Assembly: GCA_965637545.1 (NCBI GenBank)
Contig: OZ281501.1
Location: forward strand, 6,200,001-6,264,000
Source: Phallusia mammillata
Lineage: Eukaryota
Direction: 5' to 3'
Length of the DNA stretch: 64,000 bases
Made by a program: the position numbers and the translations under genes. The notes beneath the pieces are model-generated. The model ran no database searches, had not been told where the DNA came from, and saw only the letters and a list, made by a program, of their open reading frames with translations. Of this stretch, positions 40,232 through 64,000 are shown in pieces (within the stretch, counting starts at the first letter, position 1; the number at the start of each line of letters is the position of its first letter).

Positions 40232-43200
40232 ATGAATGACGATTTAAGTGACAAATTAGATTCACTGTTAAGTGTGTGGTCATCAAAAATAAAAAGTGGA
40301 GATGATACAACACTGGAGAAAGCTAAAGAAGAATTAATACAAGCATGCAATTCTATTGTTTCACTACCATACAGCATTGTAAAACAAGGTAAATGTTTAA
40401 GGCAACTACCTATTTTGTCTATTGAAGGCGTTATCTCCAGTGTTCACCCATTCAGTCATTTACCCAATACTTGGCTATAATGGTTGTTTACTTGAATTGT
40501 CCTCTTTCTACTATGTAACATTGTGTTGTTTTACAATTGGCGCATCCTGATCTGGGTGTCTTAGCTGTTACTCATCAATTTAATTTGCATATTTAAATTG
40601 GTATTGATTTTTAGTTACTTTAAGGTTTTCATGAGAAAATTTTGAATGCTGTTTACTTTTTATGTGTATAATTGTATTATTTTTAGATGTTATTACAATG
40701 TTGTACATGATTGGCTGCAATCTTTCAAGAAACAATCTTGTGCCACTGGCAGTAAAAGTGTTTGAATGTGCTGTGGAAAGCTTCAATATCATCAGTGCAA
40801 GGAAAAGTGGAATGTTGGATACCGACGAAGTTATTTTAATGAAAATATTCTATGAGACTGGAGAGTGCTGGAAAAAGTTGCAAAACGCAAGTGGATTTTT
40901 CTATGTGTGTTTGTCACAAAGTTTTGTTCCACCAGAAAAGCTGTACTAGCACTTTCTATTAGTGCTAAATTGTATATATAGTTGGTGACATGTTATCATC
41001 ATCTGCTTTAATTCTTTAAAATCTTGTTTCATTAGTGCTTAACACTGTGCTTACAGATCATTGGTAAACATTGTTTGCTATTTTAGGATGAGAGGGCTGC
41101 AGAAAGTCTTCAATCCAGTTTAAATCTATCATTCCATTGTGGTGACTTATCATTTGAGAGAAAGGTATATTGGCTGATTTTGAACTCCACAATTATATAG
41201 CATGCCTGTCAGCAATACTTTGTGAAATTTTAACCGATAGATGTGTGATTATCAAAATAGTCATTGGCATAAAAAAATGTATTGTTTTTTTGCAGTTGTG
41301 TCTTAGTCTATCTGAGACTAAAATGAAGGTTGGAAGATACTCAGAAGCTGCTGTTGGTTATTTGCGAGCATTGACCATCTTAGATGATCTGTCGTATGTT
41401 GGCATAGAAAGTGCAGAGTAAGTTGTTAGCCATTTTTTTGGAAAAATAGAGTTGTAATTAAGAACAATATAACAAGTTACTTTATTTGCAATACCACAAT
41501 GTCTCTTTAAAGCTTGAATAGTGACTCATGGTTGTCCTTTTATGTACAAGTGCTTTGTGGAATTTGTGATACTTCGTTTCTATTCTTTTTTTAAACTGTG
41601 TTGAAAGCAGGATACTTTACAATTACACCTACAAAACTTATAATTTTAGCATATAATTTTATATATTTTCAGGGATCTTCAAGTAGAGAAGACCAGTATT
41701 CACAATCAGCTTGCTAGGGTTTATGTGGAATTAAAGTTGTACAATCAGGCTTTGGATCATGCTTTACTTGTTTACAAACACTGTGAAGGTGTAACAACCC
41801 CTGAGGTAACATTATTGTGTGTTTATTGTCAGTCAATCCCTAAATGTAAGTTGCTTGTTAGATACTAAAAATGATTGGCACACTGTATGACCATCTTGGG
41901 AATCCAGAATCAGCCCTGGAGTTTTACAAAAAGTGTTACAATGTTACAGAAAACAAAGGTTGGAAAAAATTGCAAATCAATTAATGCAACACTTTTAATT
42001 TAAACAAATTGCTCAAAATCCTTTTTATTTATCTGATATTGATTTCAGGGGCCAAGTTATCATCAGTTATCGAATGTATAGTTTGTGATTTGATTAAGCT
42101 TGAGAAACTTGATGAGGCTTTGGAATACATTAACAAGCAGTTAAAATGTGGAAGGTGAGCACAAACCATTTTTAGCTTATACATGTATATGTAACTAGTT
42201 TTCACTGGGCATTGTGATGTGCCAAAGCTTTGGTATCAATTCAAAACATTTTGCTATTTTATGAAGATTCAGTTGCAACAGTCTACTCAAAACAAAGATA
42301 AGAAAGCAACATAATTATTTTGTTGCTGTAACACTGCTGTTTTGTCTGTGGTAGCAGATATGTCTGATTTGGCCAAACTTTTCTAGCAAACCTACCAAAT
42401 GAATAAATTGGTCTGAATTTAGCACATACAGTACATCACTAGTTTTGCACCTTTGCAGTTGTTTTGTTTTGGATACCCAGGATATATATTGCTGAATTAT
42501 CTTATGAACCAAATCAAGTTTTAAGCAAGCTTGTTTAAAATGATGTAAAAACCTGCCTTCTACTTTACTTTTTACTAAGTTAGTAATATTTTTCATTGTT
42601 TTTGCACTTAGTGACAACAAAGATGAGTTCACTATTTTCTCTGCTGCATTGCACAAGGGGGATGTCTTCATGTTGACTGATGACGCAGAAGCAGCAAGAA
42701 GCCAGTTTAACTTTGCTATGAAATTGAGTCAAACATTTCCTGATGAGTACTTCTGTGAATGCAATGCTTTATGCAAGGTATGTTGCTTAGTGTAAGTTGA
42801 CGACAGCAGATTCCAAAATGTTCTCCTACGTTATTGTCTGTAAAAGTGCATGTGTGCTAGTGATGCATTTGTGCATTTTAAAATTTTTTGGTCAATTTAC
42901 TTATTAGATAGCTGACAGTTTTTCGGAAGAGGGACGTTACATGCATGCCCTATATGAGTGTGAACGTGCCCTAGCATTGGCACGCAAAAGTAAATCTCCT
43001 GATCTGCTTGATAAAATGCAACTGCAAGTGGCAATTCACAGTCAGCATTCAACATCTGAAAAAGTAAAAAAAAGTTCCTCAAGGTACCAGTTCTTGGCAT
43101 GTTGTGATTAACCTGTTTCAATTTTAAAGGAACTTTCTTCGGCTTTAGCTACTTTATGCGCGAATGTAAATCAACAATGTGGGGATTTTGAAATGCTCAA

Positions 43201-46200
43201 TGCCCAAGAACTTAAAGTGCCAACAGAGCAGATTGATAAGTTTTCATCTTGCTGTAAGGCAATACAGGTATGAATCAATTTAAATGTTTGTCTGTTAGTT
43301 TCGCATAACTTGTGAAACGTTTTTTTCATTGGAATATTAGGTTAGCTTTGAAAACATCATAATGCACCCTTTTTCTAAGGACCAGATAATGGTTTTTATG
43401 TCAGAAAAAAGTGTTACAAAAAATGTACTGATAAACGATATAACATGTAGCATAACTGCAGATTAAAATTTTCTAAACTTTTATATTTCCAATTTCAGGT
43501 ATTATTAAAATGCTATTGATTTGCATTGTTTAGGTGATTTTACATAGATTGCACCAACCAACAGCAGCATGTGTGATTGCAGAATGGTTAAATCAGTGCA
43601 TTGTGACTAACACTTGGACCACATATATACCAAATGTTACAGGTTGCTTATAAAACTATTTGTCTGTATTGGTTCTTTGTTTGTAAATCATTGTTTTACA
43701 TTTTTATGCAGATTTACTCTCTGGCAAAGAAATGAAGGATTTTAACTTTGAACATTACCTGTATCCAACGAGAGAAAATTGTACTGTCGTTTTTACCTGC
43801 TGCAGATATGGTAAGAGAGTTACTTTGAATTTGGTGAAAAGCCGAGATAGCAGCCTCAAACTTTGAAACTTGTTTGTCCTGTTTCAACTTGGCTACATTC
43901 ACTATTAGTTTCAATTACCCCTGATAGGTTACTAAATTTTAGTCAACGAATAAATCCTGTGAAACACATTTTCTCAGTTTTTTTGTTACTGCATGATTAA
44001 TTCTACCAATAAGGTTATCTGTCGTTTGGTGATGATGTCCTATATGATTTTATGGCAATATTTTTTTTATCACTTTAAGAAAATATTTCTTAGTGATTTG
44101 TTTCAGAGCAAATACAGAACAACATGTCACTAACCTTTATACCCATATAAGAACAGCACAAAAATTTGTTTCTTGTTTTCTTGAAAATAGTGATTTTTTT
44201 CTTAGACATTCTCACTAATATTTTGCACAATGGAAATGCCAGAAGTTTTCTGATGTCAGATCGTGTGATCAATATAAAGAAGACAATTGTCAGAATAAAA
44301 GCTCTACTCGAAGTTTTACAACCACAAAATGACAAAAAGTATTCCATGTTCTACCAGACAGAACAAAGGTGAGGCAATTTTCTTCATTTAAATAATAATA
44401 ACCGACAAACACTTGGTAAGTGTGATTCCAGTGCCTTTTTGGTTTATGCCCGTTTGTGACAACTACAAGATGCTGTGAGGTTTGGCATTCTGTGTCAACA
44501 GACTGTACCAAAACTGGGCAATACTGCCTGTATGGCCAATGTCTTTTTCATGAGCTGCACTGATGAGACGGAATAGATAAATGGAAACAGTGAACTGTCT
44601 ACATCTAATATATCATTGCATTGGCACAAAAAGTTGGCCACAAATCTACCTACCACACTCAAAAAATATTTCTGTTACTGCCTTAATGCCCTTTTTTGAC
44701 ATTTTTTGTTGATACTTGATCTCTGACGGTTGGGTTTGAAAGAAGTGTATCTGTTCAAACGATGACATAAAGACAGTTAAACTGCAACTTGTCGCATAAC
44801 TTGGTTAATTGCAATAAATCGCTAAGTGGATATGCGGTTAAATGGATTCGTTTCGATTTAAAATTCATTTTTTGTTACGTACAAGCAAGATTGTTTTTAT
44901 AGAAACCTCCCTCAAGAGAGTACGAACAAAACTAAAACCGTTCCTCAAATTCAAAAGGAAGACGGTGCAGGAGACCAAATTCGAACATCCACTTCTAAAT
45001 CGCTTCCAACAACGGAAGAAGCTGGGGATCAAGGTAAAAATAAAAGACTATGTTTTTACCGGAGGCAGACGTTTTTTTTTTATTCATTTTGTCATTAGGC
45101 CTATCCACAGAATAGGTCTTATTCAAAGCCTGAAACCAATCAAAACAAATATTACCGAGTGTGGAGTCACACTCGCATTAAACCCGTTTTTTTAACTGAA
45201 GACCGAACCCAGGCCGGAAAGTTCCACCCGACTTACAACTTTGTGCAGTAAGGACAGAAACATGACAAGAACTGGCCAATTAGAAATAGGAAGACTGCTT
45301 TTACATTTTTTTCAGTCGGTAGTTCCGGCATTTTATTCATAATATTTTCTGAAATTTGCTTGCGTGAGAATTATCGCTCGCATTTTTTTGTTTTCAATTT
45401 TTTGTTGTAGAGATGGGGCCTGATGCAGCATTAAAGGAGCTCTTTGTTTTATTGATAAAACCCCTCGACGTAAATAAAGTTGAAACGGGGTCTTCAATAT
45501 GTATCATGGCCGACGACTTTCTCGCGGAGGTGACATTTTTATTTCCTAGTGTTGAATAAATGATGGAGAAAATAATTGCAAGCGAAACCCATACATCAAG
45601 AATTGGTCGAATGTTAATGAGGACCAGCGCCACTATTGTTGCTCAAAGCATAGGTTTGAAATTAATGTAAACAAGTTAACGTTGCAGAACGAGAAGTAAT
45701 CCATTTTAATTCTATTTAAATAAAAGACTGATAGTGCCTGCAAGGTTGAAATCTTATCTTTTGCAACGAATCGGTTCAGAAATACAAGTTTTGCGTTTCC
45801 TAAAGTCAGATTTGCTTACATGAATAAACTTTCGCACTAATCTATTGATACGTCATGTCATAATACAGTAAACATGATCGGTCATATTTAACACTTTAAC
45901 ATTTTATCGTATAGGTTCCTTTTGACCAGTTGATTGATACCTCAAGTCAAAAACCGCTGGGAGAAACATTTCATATTTTCACAACTCCATGCTTTCTTGC
46001 ATTGAACAACAAGTAGGCTAATAGCGATATGTAATATTTTAAGTGTTTTTTAAAGATTGTTTGACATTTTGGAGGTCAGTATATTATGTGTCAATCCATC
46101 TATCTAGCTAACTGTTATTTGTAATTGCAGCAAATGTAACGACCATCCAAAATCGCATGGAAAGTCTAGTGGAAGTATTCGGTATGTGAAAAAGAACACA

Positions 46201-49200
46201 TATATCATTATAGATCAGTTGAAGTGCATGCTTGGATACATTGTTGAAACTGTTAGATCTGCCTTTTTAACCCATTTTCTTATCAACTCTTTACAACTGA
46301 TTCCTCAAATCTATGCACCCTTGACATTGATGTAACAACTGTGCCAATTTTTAACCCGTTTTGCAGACGTAAAACAAATGCGAATTGACATTTTTCAAAA
46401 GAACTAAGTGTATCAAACTTGTGTTGTAAATGTTATGTAACTAGATTGCAACACTTTTCGGCTAACTAATTTTTACCTACATTTTTTGGTGGAACCCTAT
46501 ACCCCCTTCAGACACATTAACCCCTGCGGCTGTTGTGATAAAGAGTGATATCATATAGATTACTTTAGTATCCAGTATCACTTACACCAGGACTTCCCAA
46601 ACTGGGAGTCGCGTAACAAACTTGAGGGGTCGCAGAGAGCTTCACCATTTTACGCAAAGTATACTCCATATTAAACTATTCTACGTTTCAGTCGTTTAAT
46701 TCGAAACACAGTTGTTTAAACCGGTACGATTTCGCAAAAAAACATTATTTTTGACTGAACTGTAGATTCTTCGTAAATAAATCGGTTTATGACGTCATAT
46801 GCCAATAAAAAAATTCGAGAAAAATTTAAGTCATTGTACAACAGCATAACATTGGCGGTCTGCTTGCTATTCTAACCCACATCCTAAAGATTTTGCATTG
46901 TCTTCCAGTGAACAGAAACTTGCTGAAACATTTCACAAGCCATCAGAGTTGTTCTCACTACAAACCATCGGCATCGCCAAAGACCTTTCCGGTTTAGTGA
47001 CGTCATCAGCCACGGGCGTGAGTGTGATGACGTCACCGCGATACGTCACTCCGCACAAACGCGTAAGCAGGACTGCTTAGTTGTTACGTGTGAGCAAATA
47101 CTTAATATTGTTTTGCAAAAAGGTGCCGTTTCCTCTCAAGACATCTGTTATCGGAGGTCCTGTTATGCCTGCCGAACTAAAATATGAAAATACCGTTTGG
47201 AAGCCAAAAAAACGCATGACGGCGGCCGTTAAAGAATGTAACAAAGTAGGTTACGATATTTTGTCGAATTTAAGATACTGCACGGGCCTGGTAATAAAAA
47301 AATGCTTTGCAGCCCATAACTTGAAAATCATGGCGTAGCCTATACTCTACTAACAATTAAATAACCGCCCTTAATTATACATTTTGCCGTTTGGTTATTT
47401 TCGGCATCTTGGCAAATGTTTTTGAAGTTGCTCAGAAAATAACTAGGTTAGACCTAATTTTGCTGCGCAGATTGCCGAGTATTTGAACGTAGACGCTATG
47501 ACTGGAGAAGAAGCGACCAAAGACAAGTTTTTGTCCGAATTTTCTGAAGTCACGTTAATGCATGTGACAACTTATGCTGACCTATCAAAAGGTTATGACA
47601 TTTTTATGCTATTTCTTGATTTATGTAACTAACTTGGAAACTTATGAAGGCAGAATCAAAGAGTTGTTTCAAATAAACATGTTTATAAAGCCTAATTTCT
47701 CAAGATAATTTTGTCTGTTTTGTTTCAGCCTTTGACAACAAACCCCTATTTTACCGTACGAAAAGATGAAAATATTCTGATTTACGTAAAAGGTCTTGTC
47801 TGAATTAGTTTCAATTGTTCTCAAATCACAAAATTTTGCTCCTTATGTGAGCTTTTTGGAACCACAGTTTGGCGGCCACTGGATTATACCTGGTCCAGAT
47901 CCAATGTATAACTTCATAATAAAATGAAAACAGTTTTTAAAGCACAAAAGATTTTTGTAGATGCGAAACATTTTTCACAGGTGTTTTGGCATTCAAGCCT
48001 AATAGTTTTCCCGCTGAGGACTCGCCCTACTCCCCCTTGAGCTATCTGGTAACACTTCAAGACTTCATTGAAAGAAAACCCAGTAACTTACAACTTATGG
48101 TTATCTCATCTGGTCACGGTTGGACGAACACGGATGTAAAGTTGCCGCAAATTTTGTTAACCGCAGGTACGTGTGTTTTTTACTTTGTTATTTATGGATA
48201 TAAAATTGAGTTACTTATTATAGTTATTATTAGAATCACCAAAAATGCAATTCATTGTATCGAACCTGACAAATAGGCATTAAAAATTATTAAAACAATG
48301 GCACACAAAATGAAAACCACGAAACGATGATATGATGAAACAAAATATTTGAAAATTATTTTTCATCTACGTACAGCAAAACATCTAATTCAACGTTGTA
48401 TTTTATGGTGTTTACTTTCAATATGACTCGCTTGAAAAATGCTCTTACATCTCGTTAAAATGGCGCCCTTCCATTATACTGTGAAATAGAGGAGTTTTTC
48501 ATTTAAAAGTAAACAAAAAATGTTTTTTGACGTGGAAAAAACTTAAAAGGCAACCAATAAAGTTGGTTAAATCTAATCTTCAACAGGCTCGGTTATTGAA
48601 ATTAGGAAGTGTCCAGCAACAGTTGGAACACGAACACATCTGTAATACAGTGTTTTGCATGCTAACTGAATTGATCAGACAATGCACATTACAAATCACA
48701 GAAACTTTGTTAGTGGGCATGGTTTAACTTGGCACAGAAGTTTTCATAATGCCACGTATGGTGTAAAATCTCAATTGAAAATGCGTTCACTCACACCAAT
48801 GTGCATTCACGTAAGTAAACGACAAATCAAAAACGCGACTATGCAGAACAATGCAGTGGATTTTAAGCGATAAACACTGGCAACGCCACCGCCAATTACA
48901 CTGTTGTAACGTCCTGTTAATACGTTTACAGCGACTACAGTTGAATAACCAGTAGCATGCATGGTATCGCACATTTTGCTTTCTTCAATGCTACCACAAG
49001 CCTGTACTTCGCTCCCTACTCCCTCACACTGGCTTTCAGATACAGTAATTGTTTTGCGAAAACAAAAACGGTGTCGTATTTTCACACGGATACATGAGGA
49101 ACAGTCCGTCCAACTAGACCAGGGAGCCCATCGAGCCAGGACGCAATACGTGTCAGTACAAGTTTCGCTATCTAGGCGCCACTGGCGTCCTAAGCAAGGC

Positions 49201-52200
49201 GGGTGCAGGCATCGACGTGTTGTAAACTTAACACACGCCGATGCACACTGGGTACCAACTGTCGCCCAATCGTTCCAAAGACCCTGGGATTTTACTGGAC
49301 AGTAACCCCACTCGTCAGACCGGTATTCATTAGTTAACTCCGATACTGTGGCGCACCAGTATGTGCTTATTGGGAGGCGGCGTGTTGGCGTTGGTTCATT
49401 GGTGCATGCGTGGTATGTGACACTGTTATATACGAACGGAAAAATACAAGGCGAAAAGGCTGGTCGATGTTGAGCAGTGGACGTAGCGACCATGATAGGG
49501 AAACTTCCTAAATCAGGACAAGGTGGTACGTTGCAATAAGCAATTGTTGTTGTTCGCCACCGTTCATTGGTGATACAAAACGGGCGTGGTCTTTTACCTC
49601 CTGGATTTCGGCAGCCCGCTTGAGAAAAATCGAGGTCCGGGTGATCGTTGCTTATGGTGTGATACTGGTCGTAGTTGTTCCAGCGTTTGCAAGCGGCTGT
49701 TCCGTGGTAAGCTGGGTTATTGCTATTAAACTCACGTCCACGTGTGCGTGCATCGTAACATGTACGCTGTTTGTCGCATTCAAAATTATTGCAGAAACCA
49801 CCCTCTTTTTCGTGGTCTCCAATACAGGGTGGGTAGCGACAAATCCGCCGGAGAACAGTTGTCCCACGTCCGCAAACGCTACTGCATTTCCCGACACTGG
49901 TCCAGGCGCTCCATGTTCCTATTTGCTGTGTTGCGCATGTAGAGAATTTAAACTCTTCGCTTGTAATCCGAGCATAAGCACAAAAATGGTCGTGTTCCGA
50001 ATCCGGACTTTTCTGACATGAATGAACCGTCTTGCCGCGTAACTTGAATGGAAAAATACACTCACCGCCATTTAGGGTATAAATAGGTTCAACCAGCTGA
50101 CATCTAGGTACATCGCAGACTTTTAATCCGACTGGAGAGTTGTTTTTTCGTTTAGCATAGCACACTGGGAGCGTAGAGTCTTCAGGAATTGGATTTCTAC
50201 AGTAGTTGTGGTTTCTATCGCCCAGTACATCCTTTCTGCTCCAATCACGGAACGTATGAGCTAGTCGTGGTGAAGCAAAAACTGTTGTCCATTTCTCGCA
50301 TACCAAGCCGTCTATAAATTTCGACATTGTGCCTCTGTACGCTGTTGAGTCGCTACCCATACACTCAGGACATGGATGCGTATTGCATTGGCCTCGGAAT
50401 GTTATCTCGTCGCCAGGATAGGCCGAGCCACATGGAGGATAACGGCAATGCTGGCGATATTTGATTTTTCCCCCACCGCACGCCTCACTGCAGCCATTTG
50501 CCCCTCTGATAGCAGTTATCGGTGAAAACGTCCCTCTATAAGCTCGCGGGCAAATACCCCATCTAGTGTCCGTTGCCCGTTGCGGACTTTGGTCCGAGTT
50601 TCCCAATGTGGCGCACACAGCAAATCTAAAAGTGTGAGTTCCCTGTACGTTTTCGAACGAAATGTCTTCTTCGATGCACTTTTGGTACGTTTTGCCTAAG
50701 CTTATAAACGGAAACACACATGGTCTGTCATTATCTGGGCCTCCAACGGTCCTAACCTCGCCTGGAAGAAGAGGGCAACGCATAATATCACAATACATCC
50801 ACCTCAAATCTGTGTCCACAAAGCACCACGGCGCCACACGAAAACCAAACGGGCTTGGGTTTCGGCAATACGAATGTACAAGATCTAACCCTGCACCCTT
50901 AGCGGCGTAAAAATGATATTTGCTATCCTTGTTTCGCCAGTCAATACACGTATCACCTCCCAGAGTACGACTCACTGTTCCTATGTACGCATGCCCTTCC
51001 CCGTAAAAACAATCGACGTTTTCCCCCATAGTTACCTTCCAGGTACATCTGTGAGTGTTGCATGACCCTTCATATTTCAACTTTGACCCTTCACACAACG
51101 GTATCAGACACTCTCGAATGTACATCCACTGGCCACCGTCACACATTTTACTGCAAGTCGTGGTCTTATTCCAAGCCGTCCACTTGCCTTGGTATATAGA
51201 TGGACATCTAGCCCAAGTTTTAGGGTTCTCGTCGTTGAAGTTCTCATCATGTGGGCAATAGTAAACTCCACTACGAGGCACACAGTTGAAATAATACTCC
51301 CCTAGGAATTGGTAAGGAAAATGACACGGTTTTACCACCTGTATTTTCCCTTCCTCTGGAATTGTGTACGAAATGCCACGCATGTGAACATCGTTGCAAT
51401 GCGGAACTTCGCAGTATGAAGTAGCCATTTCAGTTGATACGAAGCACCAGGGAAGTTTTTCTGCTCCCAAAGGATTGCGGCAATAGCTACCTTCTAACTC
51501 GGCGCGTAGTGATGGTTTAAAATGGGTGTTATGCGTTTCAAATGATTTCCACGGCAAACAAGTTACTCCTCCTAGCGCCACGGAGACATTGCCGCGGTAT
51601 GTTTTCCCGTTATCTTCAAGACATGTCTTGCAAGGCTGAGTGTTACAGACTGGGTGATGGCCTTTATCTTGCTCTTCGTTACACGGTGGGTGCAAGCACG
51701 TACGAGTCCTCATAAATTTTCCACCGCCACACACAGCACTGCACCTGCCATCCGACCACGATGACCAAGTCCCTATTGTTGCTGTTGGACAAATAGCAAA
51801 TATCCCCGATCTAAAGCCGTTCCTAAGCGCCGCAAACGACGAACCTCGTAGGTTTTTCGAGACATCGTTGGAAATAGCGCAGTAACGAAACTTATTGTCA
51901 CCAAAAGAGTTAAATGGTGTGCACGCTTCGTGAGACCCACGGTCCGCCCCGACAAAGGGAAAAATACACGTCTTTGCAGGTACAAGCACGTTCACAGTGT
52001 CTTTAGATATCGCCCACAATTCTCCCGGTTGAGTGGGGCACCTGGGTATGTCACAATATGCCCATTGCACGCTGTTATGCTTAATAACGTAACACCACGG
52101 TATGCGATGAACTCCTGGACTGGGGTTACGACAGTGGTTTTCACGAAGTCTTGGAAAACCTGTTGGTAAAAAACGGTTGCTATGGTGTGAGCCGTCGTCA

Positions 52201-55200
52201 TCCCAACGAATGCAATTCGCGCCAGTGACTGTGGATGAAATACTGCCATCATAAGTAAGTCCAGTGCCAACGAAGCAGGTATCGCTGCCTGGTTGTTTTT
52301 GAAAGCACGGATGTGTGTTACAACGTTCGCTTTTGTCCGTTCTGACAGCCGTTCCCCCGCATGGGGCCAACAAACATGTGCGAAAGTAGATCTTGTATCC
52401 ACCACCACATTTACGGCTGCAGTCCCCTTCATATTTCCAATCCGTCCACCGGCCTCTATAATACATAGGACAGTAAGCGAACCCTTCTATAGACTCCATC
52501 TCGCACTGCTCTCTGCCCTCGCTTTTATCATCAAGCAAAGTACAGGCGTCAAACCAGAATGCCCGGTAACGGAATGGAAACTCGCACCCGTATGAAGCTC
52601 TACTATTTGTCGAAAAGCGTGGAATAGTATACCCAATACCCTCGCCGGTTAGGTTAGTCTCGCAGCTTGGTAAATCGCAAAACATACGCACTGGTGGGTC
52701 CTCCTTATTTCTGTAGCAGTAAGGCTGCGCAAATTCACTCCGTGGGTTACGACAATAGTTGCTTTCTAGCTCTGGATACTGAACGCTTGTTACCCCTGGG
52801 TGAGCGTGTGGTGTATGTACGTCCCACCGTTGACATACCGTGCCATCATTGGCAAAATTAGTTGTACCGCGATAATTGTTTCCTTTGCCGTAGAAGCACT
52901 CCAGGCACGGTTTAGTATTGCAGCTTTTTCCCATTTTACGGTTGATTCCGTGACACAAGGGCATGCGACATACACGCGTAAGCACAAAGTGCCCTCCACC
53001 ACAGGAACGGCTACAGTGACTTGCCTTTTTCCAGGTACCCCATTTACCTCGAAACGCATCAAGGCAGTAGCCCCATTTTGTGTGTTTGTCAAAGTCGTGG
53101 GTAAGTGAGCACCATGCCCTGTTTCGTCTGTGATCAGTAATACACTGGTCGTGACTCTGTCCGTCAACGATAAAAGGAAAATGGCATTTGCCAATGGCTT
53201 TATCTGTCAGTAAAGCCATTCGGTTATCCGCCTGAAATTGAACTGAGTTGCCTTCAATGGTTAAAATCTCGTCGCTTGTACACGGCTGGATGTTGCACTT
53301 CTCACCCTTCTGTGGGCCTTCGGTGCTGCCCGAGCAGGGAGCAAAGAGGCAGAATCTTCGTTTGTACACAACTCCACCACCGCATGGCTTATCGCAGGTT
53401 GATGGCCCAATCCATCCAGACATTGTACCTCGTTGGGCCATTGGGCAAACACCCCATTCTTCTGGATTCTTATCATAGTTAGGTGAAGTGGGACAGACGT
53501 GCCTACCGTCGGGTAGCGCAAAACATCCCCATGATTCATGGTGGTTACGAATATAAGGGAATATGCAATTTTTACCTACTACGGGGCCTCCTTCAACCGT
53601 TACCATTTCTGCCTCTAAAGTACTGGTAGCAGCAGAAACTTCACAAATGGACCGCACTTCTTTATCAGTCCCACTGTTATATTCCACCCATTCGGATTTT
53701 TCTGTTAAAACGCGAACAACTGGACTTCTGCCTACGGTTTTCCAATTTTCTACCTGCGCGACGCTCTCCAAATGCAGTCGTTTTTGTGTGCCAGCTTCTA
53801 ACAATACACCGTACGTATAATCACATGTCCACTGCTGGTTCTTACTAAATGCATCACATGGTAACAGTTTTAAACTTTCCTGGACATTTTGATTTTCGTC
53901 AAGTACAGCGCTTAAACAACGCAGATACTTAACGCTTCTAAACATGTTTGGTTTCAATCTCTGCCATTTCCAAGCTTCGTTTTCGATTGAACAACTTTCT
54001 TTAAGTTCAGGAATATACTGATCGTTATCATGTACAGCTACCAAGCAAAACCCCACATCTTTTCCAGCTAATTTATGGTAAATTACAAACTCATCAGTAG
54101 CTAACACCATTGTTGCAAGCAAAGCACAAATCCCTTTGTAAACAAACATTTTGTCTCATAGCTATTTTCTTGACTGTGTAATAAAACAAGATACTGTCAT
54201 TACAGATGAACAGTTTCTGTCTGTGACAAACAAACGCTTTGTCGTGAAATAACTGTGCATTGTTTTATGAAGGTGTCGCCTGTGTAGTATACTTGAGATG
54301 GCCAGTTCCAGATTGCGTGGCCGAAAAGTTCTTCTTCCACTTTTACATGAACTTGCAGAAGTCGTGCAAAGTTTCCAGAGCTTTGTTTAATGCCAAGGAA
54401 GCTACAAGAGAGAGGTGGGTTTGCTTCTAATTGTACAATAACAATTGTAAGTATTTTGGTGTTGAAATGATATTTCCCTTGTTTTAATAATGTAGTGTTT
54501 CACAAACTAGTACGCATATTAGTGGTAGTACTGTAAGGTCTTTCAGCACAAGAAGTGTAGCCTATTTGTTGATTTTCTGGTTATGAGTTATAATAATATT
54601 AGTGCAATATTTTCTAAAATTTACACCACTTTTATTGCATGCTTTTGAGTTTTTGGGGGATATTAGTGGTACACCAAAACGGTTTAAAACCTACGAATGG
54701 TAGGCGAGTAAAAACTCCATTATTTGATTAATCGCCAGTTATGTTCCAGCAGTACTTACTGAAGAGTTTGCTTAAATGTTCTAGGTGTTGGGTTTATTTG
54801 CATTTTTAAACTCATTTAAACCAGTTTGTCAACTTTCTAAAACCTGTAATTAGTATTAATAGTTTAATGTTTTTGGTTAGAGTTGTCTGTGTTGTAACTA
54901 AACCAACGATTTTACACTTTTTTGTGGCAGATACCCAGATTACACACTTTGGAACGCTTTCACAGCTACCGGCAGTGACGTTACAATCGATCTTTCTCGA
55001 ATTCGCCAGTCTCAGTTACAGAACCGTTTAAATGACGTCGAATCACCTGTACTTGACACGCCACCTTTTATTGATGAAGGTACGAAGCAAAACTCAAATG
55101 AAAAATGACAGTTGATGCCGCTTCTAAGTCTAAAACCTAGTTAATGAAAAACATGACTTTCTTTCGTACATACGCTTTTACTTAATTAAGGTAAGATCAA

Positions 55201-58200
55201 CACAAATTCATAGCCGGTCACGACAAACTAGTACGCCAGGCCCATTAAAAGGGGTCATACCGAATCAGCCAGTCATCAAGCATTCCCATATGGCAAGGTA
55301 CGGACTAGAAAAATATACCCGGGAATCTTGGAAAGACTTCTGTCGTCGGTTCGAATCCCACGGCAGGATATATTTTAGTCTGTGCTATATCGGAATGCTT
55401 GGTGACCGGCTGATTGGGTATAACGCCTTCAAATCTTCAAAGTAATTTATTGTGTTTTTCTAGTGGTAAGCGACGAAGAACGGTTTCATCTCGTCCAAGA
55501 AGCTTTGTCACGCTTGGGTGGTTCTGTGTCAGGTGATAGTGACGTCATATCGTTTTTACTGGGTCTGGTGGAGGAGGCCACAGAAAGGCTGACCAGCGAT
55601 GATAATGTGGATAGACCAATTGTGATTCTCCCCAAAGCTGTAGAAAATGTCGATGGTATGTTATCTGCTGCCAATGCAGTTTGCATGAAGTGTATTTTAA
55701 TGCACATTTTGGTGCCATTGGTTTTGTATCTGATAGCAACGTTGGGTAAAAATGTAAATGCACTGCAAACTTCTAATAACCAACTTAACCAGGTACCAAA
55801 TAAACGAAACAAAAGAATAAAACTTCAATCTCTAGACATTGTTTGTTATGTGTGGTCTATTATAATTGTAATATTTTGTTCAGTTTTTGATTTGTTAAGC
55901 AGTCTAATTAATTTTCTGTTTACCATTAAAAGTTTTATTAAAGTAATTCACCTGTATAACAGGTACGGTTGATTTGCTTTCGCTCATGGGATTTGATCTG
56001 CAACCGATCGACAGCAAAAGTCTACCTCCGACCTCAGATAGATCACATGGCGCAGACAAGATGATAGTGTTTCCTCACTGGAATCAAGACTCCCTGCTTC
56101 TGCCCTGTCACCAGGCTCTCATTGGCCTTCACGGTGAGACGATGCGTCGCTTTCTAGTCTTCTCAAAGCTGTGCGCTTGCGCAATTGCTAGTAGACTCTC
56201 AGCGCAAAAAAAAACTATACTGCGCTGAAATTAATCCACCACACAGGGTACACACTGCATGTGCCCATAACATTGCAATATAGTGTACTCAGACACATTA
56301 CTAAAATGATTTTAATGTATGCTAAGATATATGAAACGTTAGAGGGAACATCGTGTAGGATAGTCCAAGAACAAAGAGATTTTTTTGGCAGCAAAGCATT
56401 TGTTACTAACCTGGTACCAAGCATCGTATGCTCTTACTTAATGTTTGGGTTTGTTTGGATCAGTGGTTCTCAACCTGTGGTACGCGTACCACTAGACAGC
56501 CTTTAAACTTGCTAACTGAGCCGGTTTCAGCAATACGCAAGCCTGGCAAAGAAAAATGGGCCCATGTCTTGGTCTATCCATTCACACGGGGTTTTGGTGG
56601 TACGCAGCCATAGAAACAGTCGCCAGGTGGTACGCGATCAGTATAGGGTAGAGAAGTACTGGTTTGATGACCCTCTCAACTTAACGAGCATGCATAATTT
56701 TGTGGTTAACTAGGCCTTAGCTTGTCAGGAAACAGCTTGCATAAATGTCGTTTTTTTGTTTAGAGTTGTGTCAGAATCCCGAATGTCTCCGCATGATGGC
56801 GCTAATGCTTCCACTGCAACAAGAGCTTCTTTCCTATCTGATTGACTTGGTAATTATTTTGACTTGGTACAATTAGTGCTTAAAAAATGTGCAGCATGTT
56901 TTTATTGGTAAATCCTATTTCAGCAAATACTTTATTTTTGTTTAGTGGGTTTATGAATAATGCCAAATTTTCAAATATTTTCCAATTTTCCAGCGCAAAA
57001 CGTCTTTTGCTGCGTTAACACAGAATATTGGACTTGCACAATATTTTGGCCAAGTCCGAGTCCAATTGCGACGAAAAATTTGTTTTGTTTTAAAACATGA
57101 ATTACAATTTGCCACTTCGTATAGGTGCAACCAAAACAAACCATACTAAAGGAACACATTTAATTTTAAGATTGTTGATGTTTAAGAAATAAATGAAATC
57201 CAATGACTTGGTTTAAATGCTGATTTCATGATTTACAACTCTTCAAATCGTCATTTTGCTTGTTATATTAAAAAAAGCTTGGCTTAAGCTTTCATTGAAC
57301 TTTTTAGTTGTCTATTGTCCATCATACACCAGAAGTGCAACTTCGTACAACAGACGCCTCTGTGCGAGAATTGTGGCAGCAAAGAGCGATTCGTCGCTCC
57401 CTAAAGGAAATTGGAATTAGTAATGTTATGGACCTGGTGTTTTTTTCAAGGAGTTTAATGTCAAGGTAAAGTAAACAGATCGCTTGATTAAATAACAACA
57501 AAGCGATCGACTATGGTCAAATTGTTTCTTACGTTTAAGTCATTTAGTTTAATTTTTCTAAATTGTGTTTTCAGTTCTCACATATTTCAAGTTAAACAAA
57601 TACGTCCCTGTTCAAACTATATGCTTTTCATTTTTTATGTTTATTTAGATTTTTTTTTTGGTTATTTACTACGCATTTTACGAATAAATTTAATGGAAAT
57701 GATTTTGTGCACTTTGTCTTTGGCGATTTTATATGTTATAATGTTGTCGTATTATCTTTTTATTTGTGAATTTTTTTCTCAAGAAAACTTGTTGATTTAA
57801 AAAATATGATTTTTTTTACAAAATTATTGCTTATGTTTAGATCATGTCTTTTGGCAAGCCTCCAGTTTCTGACGTCATTCTCGTTGCATCGCGACCAAAG
57901 CGTTCTTGAACAATTGGACGTCACTTCATTGGGGAAAATACCCCAAACTGAAAGCGCAGAGGATCCCATCAAATTGGATTCGCTAAATCTTGCCCTTCTA
58001 CCAAGAAACGAGGTGACAAATGAAATATTTTTTGCTACCTTCTCTGGTATATATTTCAAAGATTTTGTTTTCTATTTTGATTTTAACTTTTAAATCTTTG
58101 TTTTTCCCTAATCTTACTAAGAAGAATAACGGCAAGTAATTTTTGCCCCTGGAAACGTATTGGTTAATGTTTGATATACCATTGTTTCTCAACCTTTTAT

Positions 58201-59780
58201 TGATTACATACTACCTGAAGACGTTTTTATCGCTGCGTGGGCCGCCACCTAAACTTTGTTTGTTCTAGAAATAGCCTAAACGTTATTTTCATGACTATGT
58301 TGGCATATTTCTGTAGCCACCAACGTTAACAATTCCAAAAAGTCGTACAAAACACGGGTTGTGCCCAAAACCACGGCGAATCAGTTGGAAAATCACAAAA
58401 CATACCTCACGGCAGACTCACATTAAGCTAATTTCCAATAGGTGAAGCAATGAGCACTTTTACCCATTTAAAACGACACATCTTCAAAAATGCTTGCAGT
58501 TAGGGTCGGGGTAAGGTATTAGCATTCAAAATTCAATACAAGGAGCAATATAAATTAGTTTCTATTAACTTTTTAAAACTTTACATCCTAACTCTACCCC
58601 TCTTCACCTGCTAAATAAATAAATAATTTAGCTCTGCGCCACCTATCCAGAATTGTCTGAATGTGGGTCTGCCGTGAGGAATGATGTCAGTAGCTAATCA
58701 GTTGGGCACTTGAGTTGCAATTCTTGATCTGATTTGAATTAAATATAGCAGAAAGCTACTCGCGTACCACCTGAATTTTGAGAACCACTGCCTTAAACAG
58801 TACATGTTTGGTCACGTGACAGGTTGCTGTCAAATCGTCATGGATGGGCGATGACAGTTTTGAGAAGGAGAAAAAGGAAAGAAAGAAACTCGCAGACGAC
58901 ATACGGAAGTTATCAGAGAAATATTCACAAGCTCTCGAGCACGCCAAGTGGTGGCATCGTGATGTGCGAGTCCCACAGCAAGTATGTCTGTTATTATTGA
59001 TAAATTGTTTTATATTTGTTGCGTACCGAATCGCTTTTACTGTGTTAAATGCTGCCCGTAACATTCGCAAGCGATTCTAGCTGCATAAAGGTCGCACGGG
59101 CGCAATATTGTGCTCAGAAAGAAAAGAAATGGAATCGCTTGCTAACACTGCATTAGATTTGTTTAGTTATCCACACCTTATGTAAAATCCAAACGTTTCC
59201 GAGGGTCGTAAGGTTGTATACAACCTTTTTTCAATGGGCCGCATTTTGCCAACATGTGCACAACCCCGCTTTAGTGGTTTGGCAGTAATAGTTCAATAGA
59301 AATATACACACTTTAATATAGCATGGTTCATTCGACACAGTAACAGGTGGATGACTTGTCTGTGAATCAAACACGCACTTGGATAAAGACCGAAAGTTGC
59401 TTTAAAAAAGTGTGTAAATGCTACATAAAAACCATTTACTTCCATAAAAGAACGTTGAACTCCAGTAAATCTGCTGTAATGTCCCTTTAATGTTTTCTGT
59501 GCAGGCTGGCAACAGTTTAGTATCGCAAGACAGTGCATTGAATGGCGGCGACCAACCGACACACCCACGAAAGGTTAAAGTTCAATCTGGTGCCACGCCC
59601 TCTTGCAACCGACTCCTATTGGACGATAACAAGCAGCAGTCAGGTCTACTAGAGACGCTAAGTCGGCGTAGTGAAGCCCGAATCATTTTACAGAGGCGAT
59701 GCGATGACCTGAATCGACGCCATACCGCCTGCATACGGGACACTTACCTCCGATATGCTGAACAAAAGTCTGTACAGTAA
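40232..59780 (+). CDS. TPR-repeat + CHAT-domain protein, TTC28-like (~30 exons, ~1395 aa)
   Basis: Phase-consistent exons: 40232-40388, 40687-40886, 41087-41164, 41296-41393, 41673-41805, 41862-41958, 42049-42154, 42612-42777, 42908-43063, 43130-43267, 43534-43642, 43712-43810, 44206-44368, 44903-45033, 45411-45529, 45915-46012, 46131-46181, 46909-47062, 47123-47245, 47471-47591, 47981-48166, 54273-54414, 54931-55079, 55464-55655, 55963-56133, 56764-56849, 57308-57465, 57841-58012, 58823-58981, 59505-59780. The N-terminal third has TPR-like helices. CHAT motifs appear in order: ALKELFVLLIKPL, VPFDQL, SVIGGPVMP, IAEYL...GEEATKDKFL, LQLMVISS, LLTAG|VACVVYLRWPVPD, FFFHFYMNL, LWNAFTATGSDV. Individual minor exons are less certain. 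Confidence 0.78.
44553..44606 (+). ncRNA. Degenerate hammerhead-ribozyme-like motif (stems decayed)
   Basis: AGCTGCA-CTGATGA-GACggaatagataaatg-GAAA-CAGtgaaCTG-TC-TACATCT. Canonical core; stem I pairs 5/7 and stem II is broken. Sequence-related to 61733-61784. Confidence 0.45.
46588..46650. mobile_element. Left-end fragment of the 19580-family MITE
   Basis: CAGGACTTCCCAAACTGGGAGTCGCGTAACAAACTTGAGGGGTCGCAGAGAGCT closely matches the sequence from 19580; no right TIR seen. Confidence 0.7.
48807..54149 (-). CDS. Intronless 1780-aa secreted, probably GPI-anchored mosaic protein: SP - ricin-B-like - FN2-TSP1 - (FN2-TSP1-kringle)x6 - FN2-TSP1-TSP1 - hydrophobic tail
   Basis: Single 5343-nt ORF with a hydrophobic N-terminus, 8 FN2-like CxFPF/Y modules, 9 TSP1-like modules (most with WxxW), 6 kringles (CRNP...P[W/Y/V/F]C) and a C-terminal hydrophobic segment TALFCIVAFLICRLLT with no cytoplasmic tail. 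No protease domain. Confidence 0.93.
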   Translation of the reverse strand: MFVYKGICALLATMVLATDEFVIYHKLAGKDVGFCLVAVHDNDQYIPELKESCSIENEAWKWQRLKPNMFRSVKYLRCLSAVLDENQNVQESLKLLPCDAFSKNQQWTCDYTYGVLLEAGTQKRLHLESVAQVENWKTVGRSPVVRVLTEKSEWVEYNSGTDKEVRSICEVSAATSTLEAEMVTVEGGPVVGKNCIFPYIRNHHESWGCFALPDGRHVCPTSPNYDKNPEEWGVCPMAQRGTMSGWIGPSTCDKPCGGGVVYKRRFCLFAPCSGSTEGPQKGEKCNIQPCTSDEILTIEGNSVQFQADNRMALLTDKAIGKCHFPFIVDGQSHDQCITDHRRNRAWCSLTHDFDKHTKWGYCLDAFRGKWGTWKKASHCSRSCGGGHFVLTRVCRMPLCHGINRKMGKSCNTKPCLECFYGKGNNYRGTTNFANDGTVCQRWDVHTPHAHPGVTSVQYPELESNYCRNPRSEFAQPYCYRNKEDPPVRMFCDLPSCETNLTGEGIGYTIPRFSTNSRASYGCEFPFRYRAFWFDACTLLDDKSEGREQCEMESIEGFAYCPMYYRGRWTDWKYEGDCSRKCGGGYKIYFRTCLLAPCGGTAVRTDKSERCNTHPCFQKQPGSDTCFVGTGLTYDGSISSTVTGANCIRWDDDGSHHSNRFLPTGFPRLRENHCRNPSPGVHRIPWCYVIKHNSVQWAYCDIPRCPTQPGELWAISKDTVNVLVPAKTCIFPFVGADRGSHEACTPFNSFGDNKFRYCAISNDVSKNLRGSSFAALRNGFRSGIFAICPTATIGTWSSWSDGRCSAVCGGGKFMRTRTCLHPPCNEEQDKGHHPVCNTQPCKTCLEDNGKTYRGNVSVALGGVTCLPWKSFETHNTHFKPSLRAELEGSYCRNPLGAEKLPWCFVSTEMATSYCEVPHCNDVHMRGISYTIPEEGKIQVVKPCHFPYQFLGEYYFNCVPRSGVYYCPHDENFNDENPKTWARCPSIYQGKWTAWNKTTTCSKMCDGGQWMYIRECLIPLCEGSKLKYEGSCNTHRCTWKVTMGENVDCFYGEGHAYIGTVSRTLGGDTCIDWRNKDSKYHFYAAKGAGLDLVHSYCRNPSPFGFRVAPWCFVDTDLRWMYCDIMRCPLLPGEVRTVGGPDNDRPCVFPFISLGKTYQKCIEEDISFENVQGTHTFRFAVCATLGNSDQSPQRATDTRWGICPRAYRGTFSPITAIRGANGCSEACGGGKIKYRQHCRYPPCGSAYPGDEITFRGQCNTHPCPECMGSDSTAYRGTMSKFIDGLVCEKWTTVFASPRLAHTFRDWSRKDVLGDRNHNYCRNPIPEDSTLPVCYAKRKNNSPVGLKVCDVPRCQLVEPIYTLNGGECIFPFKLRGKTVHSCQKSPDSEHDHFCAYARITSEEFKFSTCATQQIGTWSAWTSVGKCSSVCGRGTTVLRRICRYPPCIGDHEKEGGFCNNFECDKQRTCYDARTRGREFNSNNPAYHGTAACKRWNNYDQYHTISNDHPDLDFSQAGCRNPGGKRPRPFCITNERWRTTTIAYCNVPPCPDLGSFPIMVATSTAQHRPAFSPCIFPFVYNSVTYHACTNEPTPTRRLPISTYWCATVSELTNEYRSDEWGYCPVKSQGLWNDWATVGTQCASACVKFTTRRCLHPPCLGRQWRLDSETCTDTYCVLARWAPWSSWTDCSSCIRVKIRHRFCFRKTITVSESQCEGVGSEVQACGSIEESKMCDTMHATGYSTVVAVNVLTGRYNSVIGGGVASVYRLKSTALFCIVAFLICRLLT
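55245..55432. mobile_element. Imperfect foldback (inverted-repeat) element in a TPR-CHAT intron
   Basis: The arm at about 55251-55327 is the approximate reverse complement of about 55353-55427 (ATACCGAATCAGCCAGTCATCAAGCATTCC vs GGAATGCTTGGTGACCGGCTGATTGGGTAT). Confidence 0.7.
56461..56661. mobile_element. hAT-like MITE, degenerate right end
   Basis: Left CAGTGGTTCTCAACCT, right AGGGTAGAGAAGTACTG, internal GGTACGCG motifs. Confidence 0.6.
58180..58790. mobile_element. hAT-like element apparently containing a second MITE
   Basis: Ends CATTGTTTCTCAACCT / TTTGAGAACCACTG; no TSD confirmed. Confidence 0.5.
58405..58679. mobile_element. MITE with ~20-bp TIRs
   Basis: CCTCACGGCAGACTCACATT / AATGTGGGTCTGCCGTGAGG (one mismatch). 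Confidence 0.75.
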
Positions 59781-60711: not shown

Positions 60712-63700
60712 TCAACTGCGAAAAAGTCTGAATTTTCGTGGTAGTTTTCCGTCGGTGCTTGCCAGCGCGCTTTGCACGTCATCCAGGCTTGGCATATTAC
60801 GTAAATCGCCAAGACCCGCCAATGCAGCTTTGCCCGAAAGCAGGTTTCCCGCGATGCGTATGATGTCTTCGTTGCTAACACGCTCTGTAAAAATGACATG
60901 GAAAATTCACAAATTATTCACTTTTAAGAATATTGCATTTTTAAAGAGAAATACATTAACGTCTGTGGCACAACCGGATTTTGGAGACATAAACGTCCTT
61001 CAGTCCCTAGCACTAATGACAGTGATTGTCAGGAAATCTAGTTTGACGTTTTAACAATCACTGTTGCTCTGGCTGTTTTTGTATTATGATTGGCAGGGAT
61101 GGACCAAAACTGCAAATGTTCTGTTTGATCGAGTACCGAGGTGCAATGTGACGTCACAAACTATCCAAATTCTACGCTAGTTTTGTAGCTTTCCAAGGTC
61201 CCTTACGTCACCAGGCAAGCTGTTCAGGCCCCAGAATTACGGGTTTTTCACCATCTAACGCATTTACAAAACAGTTATTTTTGTTTTTTGATATTCTTTC
61301 GAACACTAGTTTCGTATGTTAGCAGGGTATGAACATGCAAATTTAATGCTGGGGTCAACTGCCCTATCCAGCATCAAAAACAGCAGTGCTCGGTACCGAA
61401 TACTCAGGCACTGGTTCGGCTCAGCCCATCCCTAAGATTGGGTTACTTTTCAAATTCTTGTGTAGTGTTTTACAGAACAGGAACACACTGGTAAGGTTGA
61501 CTAACCGATCATATCACACAGTTCCAGAGGTGACTTGCGCACTCCAGTGGCAAGAATCTGTCTTCCTACATCTTCGAATATTATTGGTCGTGCTTCAAGA
61601 TTCATCATAAGCATAGACTGAAGTTGCTTTTTTGCACGCTTAAGCTCAACCTGCAAAAATGTTTTGTTTATGTCTGGACTGTGCAAAATGTAAATTAGTA
61701 GAAACAATTAATAATCAAGCCAATAAATGATAAGCTGCAGACAGTGCACACTGTTTCGACCTACAAGGTCTCATAACTGCAGCTGGTGATGACAGATCAG
61801 CTGTATCAGCTAATGTGGCCCATTACCGCACTCCAGTATGTTGGAAGCAGCAAGCTGAAAAGCCATGCCTCGCCAACCTGTCCGATCCCACAACTAGGCT
61901 TTAACAGCATAAGAACTGGCCTGGTTTACAGTACACAACGAATGCTTTAACCTTGAAATTGTGACATTAAATCTCATAATTGTTCTATTATTAATGTATT
62001 TCTGGGTGAAATGGATGGCGTAATGGATGACTTAATAATATTAACTATTTACTGTCAGTTTATGAATGACCTCTAGTTACCTCATTTGTGCCTTGAGTTA
62101 ATCTCACAAATTCCTGTGTTATTACATGAACACAATCTCGAAGTTGTGAGGGATGAGAACTGCCCTGGATACAGAAAAATCCCCCATCTTCGTAACTATG
62201 GTGATACGCAGTAGCAGCATACATCCAGTGGTGCCTAAATACAAATTTGTACACTTCATTTCATGTTTCCAAAAGTCACTATAGTTTATACCAGAAAAAT
62301 GTGTATTTTGGTTGTACCTGTTTAAAACATTAAGATAGAGTCTTGAAAACATTCCCTTTCCAGGTCCACCAGCTGAAAAAGATCCTCCCCCACCCATCAG
62401 CATATTAAGTACAGCATAGGGCACAAAATCTGCATGCTGAAATGACACATACAACATAGTCATAAATTTACATTTTATGCAATGTTAGCAGCAAAATAGG
62501 AAAAGAAATAAAACATTTTTAATCAAAACTTAAAAAAGAAATTGTGAATATGATTTTTCTAGTTTAACATCTTTACCGTAAAATTGACTCCTTCCAAACC
62601 CACGGAAACATGTGCAAGTTCTGGCATAGGTACGACGCTTAAGGACAGATCGAAACTCTTCTCGACCCGTACCTCCCCACCTGTATACTGAGCCACAGAA
62701 TTATCCTGAAGCACAGGACCATCCAGTGACCAGGAAGGGGACTTTGCAGAAGCTGCACACAATAGTAAAAAAGTCTTGTAGCTTATTGATCATTGAAAGT
62801 TGAACCAAAAATTTAATACAGTAAACCTTGGTTAATCTGGACCTGTTTGGAACAAAGTATTTGTCCAGATTAGGCAAAGATCTAGATTAACTGATGTCAG
62901 TTAGTTAAAGCCTTATCAGTTATCACAGTACCTTAAGTTTTGTCTAAATTAGGCGATGATCTGGATTACTGTATGTTACCAATGTAAAAAAAAAACTGTA
63001 AAAATAATTTCACCAATACAATTTTTGATGAAACCAAAACCTAACCTGGAACAAAAATATCTTTAAAGCTGTATACTACCCTTCCTAAATGCAACAATCT
63101 CAGCTTACTTTCAAACTTATTAGTCTTACCTGAAATATATTTTTCACACATTTTACTCAATTCATCATGATCAACTCCGACCCCAGCCACGACCATTCTT
63201 TGTGGTTGGTAGTAGCTACGCAAAAATGTTTTTAGCACATCGACATTGATGTCTGCGAGTGTTTCTTCTGGGGGGAATCGAGGCAATCCCACAGTGTTCC
63301 CACGGAATGCAGCCTATAAAACATCAAGTTTTTAACTAGCATTTATCCCACATCCATTTTAGACAAAGTGTATCTGTTTTTGTGCAAGAAACCAATTAAT
63401 GATAAAAACATATTCCAAAGTTTTTCTTTACAATTCGTTTTTATTCAGTTTTTTTCACATTTCATATTTTTTTTACAATCATAATTTTTTTCACAAGCAT
63501 TTTTTATTTTTAAGTTTTTTCACAATATTAGTTTTTTTCACATTTTGTTACAATCAGACTTTGTTAATTTAATGAGCTGATGTTGCCTACCTCATGAATT
63601 AACTCTGTCATCATGGGATCAGGATCAGGTTTCTTATTTAACATTTCTAGTTCATATAAAATACTGTTGTGTGCGAGTTGAATTTCTGTATCAGGTAACG

Positions 63701-63786: not shown

Positions 63787-64000
63787 CTGGAAATAGAAAA
63801 AGTCACAAATTAGGTATGCTATTGTGGTTCTAACCCCATTTAAACATATTACATGCCACAAAACAAATTCGATTTATAATTTAGGCTTGATATATTTAAA
63901 AAAATCTTTCTTGTTTTAAAACAGCACCCATTGAACAAAATGCTTAGAATAGCAAAAAACAGGGTCAAAGATTTACTAAAATACTTCACAAAGATAATCG

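Follow-up and report, generated by a model that had tools for sequence, protein, structure and literature searches.

A tunicate gene inside a host intron encodes a predicted mosaic protein of FN2, TSR and kringle modules

What kind of protein is encoded by a long uninterrupted frame that lies wholly inside an intron of another ascidian gene? The frame was found in a stretch of 64,000 nucleotides from Phallusia mammillata (contig OZ281501.1, positions 6,200,001 to 6,264,000 of the forward strand). This whole stretch is referred to as the window, and coordinates are those of the window unless stated otherwise. A single open reading frame (ORF) on the minus strand, window 48807-54149, runs uninterrupted from ATG to stop and encodes 1780 amino acids (aa), of which 131 are cysteines. 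The ORF is antisense within one intron of a plus-strand TPR-CHAT host gene, has a GC content of ~47% compared with ~37% in the flanks, and is present in one copy in the 240-Mb assembly of P. mammillata. To judge from the sequence and its orthologues, it is a genuine gene under purifying selection that encodes a large uncharacterised protein of 24 familiar modules.

The modules themselves are well known. Fibronectin type II (FN2) modules, kringles, thrombospondin type 1 repeats (TSRs) and a cysteine-rich (CysR)-FN2 head are found in vertebrate proteins of clotting, fibrinolysis and the matrix and in mannose receptors. Their arrangement in this protein is described nowhere in the literature and databases searched. 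Full-text searches of the literature gave nothing on the protein or its accessions, and the literature consulted mentions solely another Ciona protein with FN2, PAN, kringle and trypsin modules. A conserved protein confined to tunicates that unites these four modules without a protease or a lectin array represents another route of assembly and informs the shuffling of modules near the origin of vertebrates.

Module order and module identity

The predicted protein starts with a signal peptide and a CysR/ricin-type β-trefoil, continues with an FN2-TSR pair, six FN2-TSR-kringle triplets and an FN2-TSR-TSR tail, and ends in a hydrophobic C-terminus without a cytoplasmic tail. The features are as follows (KR, kringle).

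48807..54149, minus strand: coding sequence, complete, single exon, 1780 aa plus stop; colinear with orthologues of 1768-1869 aa
54096..54149, minus strand: predicted signal peptide, aa 1-18, MFVYKGICALLATMVLAT; judged by eye; N-terminus hydrophobic in all orthologues
53625..54095, minus strand: CysR / R-type lectin β-trefoil, aa 19-175; six invariant Cys and one conserved QxW motif
53277..53582, minus strand: head FN2-1 (aa 190-237) and TSR-1 (aa 240-291)
52659..53201, minus strand: triplet 1, FN2-2, TSR-2 and KR-1, aa 317-497
52035..52601, minus strand: triplet 2, FN2-3, TSR-3 and KR-2, aa 517-705
51393..51983, minus strand: triplet 3, FN2-4 (with a long insertion), TSR-4 and KR-3, aa 723-919
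50772..51341, minus strand: triplet 4, FN2-5, TSR-5 and KR-4, aa 937-1126; TSR-5 recognised via the family profile only
50097..50735, minus strand: triplet 5, FN2-6, TSR-6 and KR-5, aa 1139-1351
49515..50075, minus strand: triplet 6, FN2-7, TSR-7 and a divergent KR-6, aa 1359-1545
48966..49463, minus strand: tail, FN2-8, a degenerate TSR-8 and TSR-9, aa 1563-1728
48810..48965, minus strand: stalk, small residues (GGGVAS) and a terminal hydrophobic segment of ~17 aa, aa 1729-1780; resembles a glycosylphosphatidylinositol (GPI) signal

The hydrophobic leader is present in every orthologue. At the other end, inspection by eye shows, in all orthologues, a cluster of small residues and then a chain that stays hydrophobic up to its last residue, in agreement with the GPI-like tail proposed in an earlier sequence-only reading of this DNA. 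Within the repeated unit, 16-20 residues separate Cys4 of the FN2 from Cys1 of the TSR, and 3-12 residues separate Cys6 of the TSR from Cys1 of the kringle; the linkers that join the units are ~14-26 residues long. These short linkers leave no room for an additional domain, and Pfam detects no protease, catalytic or other further domain in the 1780 aa.

The kringles and FN2 modules are readily recognised. Eight FN2 signatures of the form CxFPF/Y begin at aa 195, 322, 522, 728, 942, 1144, 1364 and 1568, and six kringle signatures (xxCRNP) at aa 464, 671, 888, 1093, 1315 and 1511; seven WxxW motifs are also present. The Pfam Kringle model matches with an E-value of 2e-82, and five of the six kringle positions score alone once the protein is cut into segments. 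The fn2 model matches seven stretches (E 6e-37), and seven FN2s score alone in segments. FN2-2 is the most canonical and best-conserved FN2, with a Pfam score of 58 bits. The TSRs match the Pfam TSP_1 model weakly, and TSR-9 alone among them reaches the curated cut-off. As a group they show the six cysteines and the WxxW and CSxxCG motifs of the TSR superfamily, in a variant with a short C3-x4-C4 loop; the CGGG motif is missing from TSR-8. An O-fucose consensus, CSx[ST]CG, is conserved in TSR-2 of 8/8 species.

TSR-5, TSR-6, TSR-8 and kringle 6 gave no Pfam match when scanned alone. Profiles for the weak modules were built from orthologues and internal repeats and compared with solved structures. 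A TSR profile of 40 segments matched the TSRs of thrombospondin-1 (E 1.7e-13) and ADAMTS13 (E 1.8e-7), and a profile of kringle-6 orthologues matched the kringles of HGF and ROR2 (E 3e-8). The N-terminal profile matched the mannose-receptor CysR (E 2.5e-6), followed by MRC2 (E 0.02) and the B chains of abrin and ricin (E 0.02-0.3). The Pfam model CysR_MRC2_N aligns to the same domain with an E-value of 1.5e-4 and 21.9 bits, under the cut-off of 27. Foldseek with the AlphaFold2 model of the head returned the mannose-receptor CysR (1DQG) as the top match in the Protein Data Bank (PDB), and then other β-trefoil lectins.

An AlphaFold2 model of triplet 1 (aa 317-497) reached a pLDDT of 92 and a pTM of 0.67, scores that would fit three domains held in a fairly fixed arrangement. 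The kringle of the model superposes on kringles of solved structure at ~2.2 Å, and the top PDB match of the model is the factor XII heavy chain (8OS5), which holds an FnII module and a kringle. A domain string assigned with home-made hidden Markov models (HMMs) is identical in the window protein and seven orthologues and equals the string of the sequence-only reading. This identity is a matter of consistency and not of independent proof, because the HMMs were built from those very sequences. The module order and the lack of a protease, both noted in that earlier reading, are confirmed, and every module type is supported by Pfam, by profiles against solved structures and by AlphaFold and Foldseek; the FN2, kringle and ricin assignments withstood the domain searches, the last through the mannose-receptor CysR profile.

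Orthologues and more distant relatives

A word-index search recovered nine proteins of 1157-1869 aa with 33-38% identity. The named members are from Ciona intestinalis (XP_026693149), Styela clava (XP_039263319) and Clavelina lepadiformis (LOC143468464), and the others are unnamed predictions from the European Nucleotide Archive (ENA). The Ciona, Styela and Clavelina orthologues are uncharacterised and bear the automatic database name "apolipoprotein(a)-like". In full-length alignment, the orthologues are colinear at 35-40% identity, nearly all cysteines are invariant, and 24/24 modules have a one-to-one orthologue. Each repeat has its own counterpart in seven other species. Triplet 1 is 43-53% identical among orthologues compared with 26-36% among paralogous triplets, which indicates that the repeat expansion is older than the split of these ascidians, as the sequence-only reading had supposed from the divergence of the repeats, and that strong constraint acts on the gene. 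The family tree places Styela outside a group that comprises the window protein plus P0011, Ciona, and Clavelina plus its relatives; a long branch unites P0012 and P0158.

The triplet profile was searched against 1.84 billion cluster representatives. Among the top 150 matches examined, the whole FN2-TSR-kringle unit occurs in only ~10 clusters, which comprise the orthologues, P0063/P0158, P0138 (a 433-aa fragment) and P0017; the remainder are multi-kringle or multi-TSR proteins. Among the matches inspected, ascidian astacin-(kringle-TSR)n metalloproteases also contain the TSR-kringle pair, as does an amphioxus protein with kringle, C-type lectin, EGF and TSR modules, and a metagenomic protein combines seven FN2s with four TSRs. 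A shape search of the ESM Atlas with the triplet model gave kringle-protease and ROR clusters only, none containing the triplet, and a feature search of the same resource with the whole protein gave nothing usable. Across the collections searched, the protein family with this arrangement is restricted to tunicates.

Among the non-orthologous matches is P0017, a single ORF of 1820 aa from a metagenome (L013 1793-7255; ENA ERZ27294030, contig k119_1021218) that is 25% identical to the window protein. It is likewise intronless and shares the three module types and the short-loop TSR. In contrast, it carries a C-type lectin head where the window protein has CysR, and its module order is irregular. 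The four-residue C3-C4 loop of the TSR (RxC..PPC) is common to the family and P0017, and the astacin, amphioxus and generic TSR proteins do not have it. P0017 is considered a true distant relative because this derived TSR is common to both, whereas the other proteins share module types only.

One colinear orthologue, P0012 (NCBI MEL6739763.1, on a 5.5-kb contig), is labelled as a fibronectin type II domain-containing protein from a metagenome-assembled genome (MAG) of a Planctomycetota bacterium. This entry is most likely tunicate DNA that was mis-binned into a bacterial MAG; the gene could be called by a prokaryotic gene finder because it has no introns.

Relation to known families and proposed role

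The window protein shares features with several known families and differs from each in others. As in the mannose receptor family (MRC1, MRC2/Endo180, PLA2R1, LY75 and FcRY), an N-terminal six-Cys CysR is followed directly by one FN2. The head profile aligns with the mannose receptor and FcRY over both domains in one colinear stretch, which bears out the mannose-receptor-like head described in the sequence-only reading. That family continues with 8-10 C-type lectin-like domains and ends in a type I transmembrane segment and an endocytosis tail. In contrast, the window protein has FN2-TSR-kringle units in place of the lectin array, gives no Lectin_C match in its 1780 aa and, like its orthologues, ends without a tail. 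In profile scores, the head FN2 is nearer to MMP-9, MMP-2 and fibronectin than to the mannose receptor or MRC2. Shared descent of the head with the mannose receptor family is possible but not supported by these comparisons.

CysR-like domains also occur elsewhere in the same genome. A second giant uninterrupted ORF lies on the plus strand of the same assembly (G000 contig C5, ~6252674-6263998 in contig coordinates; L025:3674-10000 and L026:1-4998). Its open frame spans 3813 aa, or 3775 aa when counted from its first Met. At least 24 Sushi repeats, among which several ricin-type/CysR_MRC2_N-like domains are scattered, precede a CUB and a trypsin-like domain. CysR-like domains therefore behave as mobile modules in this genome.

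Multiple canonical kringles are shared with plasminogen, apolipoprotein(a) and HGF (plasminogen match, E 9e-57). Unlike the tandem kringles of plasminogen and apolipoprotein(a), the six kringles are never adjacent and are each set apart by FN2-TSR; PAN and Trypsin matches and the CRNP-D-x-D centre are all missing. The residues that follow CRNP in the six kringles are RSE, SPG, LGA, SPF, IPE and GGK, and, in alignment with plasminogen, the orthologues all lack the Asp-x-Asp lysine-binding centre at this site in each of their kringles; in plasminogen this Asp55/Asp57 pair makes up the anionic centre. The protein is therefore unlikely to bind lysine or fibrin, and the automatic name "apolipoprotein(a)-like" is misleading and is corrected by the present analysis. 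Factor XII and HGF activator also combine FN2 and kringle in one chain. They differ in having EGF, FN1 and a serine protease, only one FN2 and one kringle each, and no TSR. Because it lacks protease, PAN, EGF and FN1, the window protein belongs to neither the plasminogen nor the factor XII/HGF activator family. No characterised family with this architecture emerged from the protein and profile searches or the literature, in line with the sequence-only reading, which had recognised none.

A similar module combination within the same animals is that of the ascidian astacin-(kringle-TSR)n proteins (Ciona XP_026691060 and XP_026691063; Clavelina XP_076813917), in which kringles and TSRs alternate. 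These proteins differ from the window protein by an astacin catalytic domain, canonical long-loop TSRs and the lack of FN2 and CysR. Ciona and Clavelina proteins of this kind (P0081, P0084, P0097 and P0151) are automatically named plasminogen-like or apolipoprotein(a)-like and seem to form a further ascidian kringle family that is unstudied.

What, then, might the protein do? The sequence-only reading had suggested adhesion, scavenging or decoy activity, possibly in tunic, immunity or gamete recognition, all of them candidate roles. Collagen or gelatin is bound by the FN2 modules of fibronectin, MMP-2/9, MRC1 and MRC2, and sulfated sugars by the CysR of the mannose receptor. TSRs, which carry O-fucose and C-mannose, bind glycosaminoglycans. 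On balance, and with modest confidence, we regard the predicted product as a secreted, probably GPI-anchored, non-catalytic mosaic glycoprotein that acts as a multivalent binder of matrix or of collagen and glycans. The GPI anchor would place it on the outer leaflet of the membrane, where six compact FN2-TSR-kringle beads would form an extended string carrying the CysR-FN2-TSR head. By analogy with MRC1 and MRC2, collagen and/or sulfated glycans may be ligands of the CysR-FN2 head and the canonical FN2-2, and the TSRs may bind glycosaminoglycans or protein partners. The kringles would serve as protein-binding or spacer modules, since none has the lysine-binding Asp-x-Asp centre. Together, these modules could bind or organise extracellular matrix at the cell surface in a multivalent manner. 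FN2-2 and TSR-2 are the best candidates for functional sites, and the protein provides a test case for the ligands of FN2-TSR-kringle units.

Several points weigh against this assignment. Most FN2 and TSR modules are divergent, with Pfam scores of 17-25 bits, and many may therefore have lost ligand binding. The head model is all-beta and of moderate confidence (pLDDT 67). The outer-leaflet position follows from a layout judged by eye, and the matrix-binding role is read from the modules themselves, with function and localisation both predicted. Transcript coverage is also sparse. Four sequencing runs, none recorded as RNA, were taken as RNA because the host splice was seen in them. The ORF is covered by three fragments at a depth of ~3 in one run only, compared with a host exon depth of ~3-60 across the four runs. 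These three fragments carry no information on strand, level or tissue and could be host pre-mRNA. We infer that expression of the nested gene is low or restricted.

This near absence from four data sets with good coverage of the host gene would also fit a specialised recognition role, with expression confined to a narrow stage or tissue, for example in the gamete coat, in follicle or test cells or at the interface between epidermis and tunic, and restriction of the family to tunicates fits a tunicate-specific structure. Such a role is considered unlikely because the modules are conserved slowly and one by one, with every Cys retained and one-to-one orthology across ascidian orders, unlike fast-evolving gamete-recognition proteins. 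Similarly low probability is given to a decoy or regulator that is shed from the membrane or was never anchored to it. As a non-catalytic counterpart of the astacin-(kringle-TSR)n metalloproteases, it would compete for their substrates or docking sites or for kringle- or TSR-binding ligands. GPI proteins are often shed, and, outside the orthologues, the TSR-kringle part of the triplet profile finds its best ascidian matches in the astacin proteins of Ciona and Clavelina. However, the astacin proteins have neither FN2 nor the short-loop TSR, which indicates module types in common and not descent, and the interaction is purely hypothetical.

An endocytic scavenger receptor similar to the mannose receptor or Endo180, in which the CysR-FN2 head captures collagen fragments or glycoconjugates for uptake, is quite improbable. 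The colinear alignment of the head with the mannose receptor and FcRY, together with a CysR that is nearest to that of the mannose receptor in sequence and fold, would favour such a receptor. However, the protein has no C-type lectin domains, and it has no transmembrane helix with a cytoplasmic tail and so no endocytic motifs; in addition, the head FN2 is no nearer to the mannose receptor family than to MMP or fibronectin FN2s, and CysR-like modules are mobile in this genome. Finally, a non-functional ORF, pseudogene or annotation artefact might be suspected of a frame that is confined to a host intron and leaves hardly a trace in RNA, but it is effectively refuted by conservation: a 5.3-kb open frame with 131 Cys has colinear orthologues in at least seven species at 35-40% identity, nearly every Cys is invariant across them, and the GC content (47%) is distinct from that of the flanks (~37%).

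Nested position and intron content

How did an intronless gene of this size come to lie inside the intron of another gene? The host exons on either side of the ORF were located as follows.

47977..48168, plus strand: host TPR-CHAT exon upstream of the ORF-holding intron, from tblastn with the Clavelina and Ciona host genes
54271..54418, plus strand: host TPR-CHAT exon downstream of the ORF-holding intron, ~120 bp from the ATG of the nested gene

RNA contigs from the four runs join 48168 directly to 54271, which shows that the entire ORF is spliced out of the host mRNA. The orthologue in Clavelina is a single-exon gene in the same intron of the orthologous host gene. In Ciona, the orthologous DNA lies in the same host intron, contains no intron of its own and is colinear, with a single change of frame. 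The distance from the ATG to the host exon is ~120-130 bp in Clavelina and Ciona, as in the window. Host CHAT exons were absent from 10 kb on each side of the intronless orthologue L016 and from the 3.6-5.7 kb flanks available for the intronless orthologue L014, when these flanks were tested with the window exons and Clavelina fragments; the nested position is therefore not universal.

The Styela clava orthologue has a different structure. It extends over 30 kb between CFAP43 and RPL4 and contains at least 28 exons (L015, OZ123520.1, 10001-40086). All junctions resolve uniquely as GT-AG except for one GC-AG. The introns are located inside the modules and not between them. Intron positions were compared among the repeats, since equivalent positions would date the introns before the repeat expansion; they cluster loosely across the repeats, and exact position and phase are common to KR-1 and KR-2 only. 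Styela introns 7, 13, 21, 24, 26 and 27, and introns 9, 16 and 22, contain common repeats of 70-230 bp with 72-90% identity. These repeats could be introner-like elements or ordinary miniature inverted-repeat transposable elements.

An intronless nested gene in three lineages compared with at least 28 exons in Styela makes the locus a case for weighing retroposition against intron gain. The nested gene may be an old retrocopy that replaced an intron-bearing parent, to which we give a little less than an even chance. That the family was originally intronless, with introns gained in the Styela lineage, is held nearly as likely. In a broader proposal, considered unlikely, the tunicate family and the vertebrate mannose-receptor family would be sisters that inherited the CysR-FN2 head from a common ancestor, FN2-TSR-kringle beads and a GPI anchor would stand where mannose receptors have the C-type lectin array and cytoplasmic tail, and the nested gene would be an ancient retrocopy that took the place of an intron-bearing parent that survives in Styela.

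The remaining observations concern the surroundings of the gene. The host TPR-CHAT exons extend over window 40680-59756 on the plus strand; the host is putatively TTC28-like by architecture and is syntenic with Clavelina and Ciona. A PMPCA-like peptidase M16 gene on the minus strand (window 60715-63794) adjoins the host in both the window and Clavelina. Upstream of the nested gene on the minus strand (window 54150-54180), a pyrimidine-rich tract ending in CAG is located ~25 nt 5´ of the ATG and resembles a splice or trans-splice acceptor. An out-of-frame ATG is present 10 nt upstream of the start codon of the ORF.

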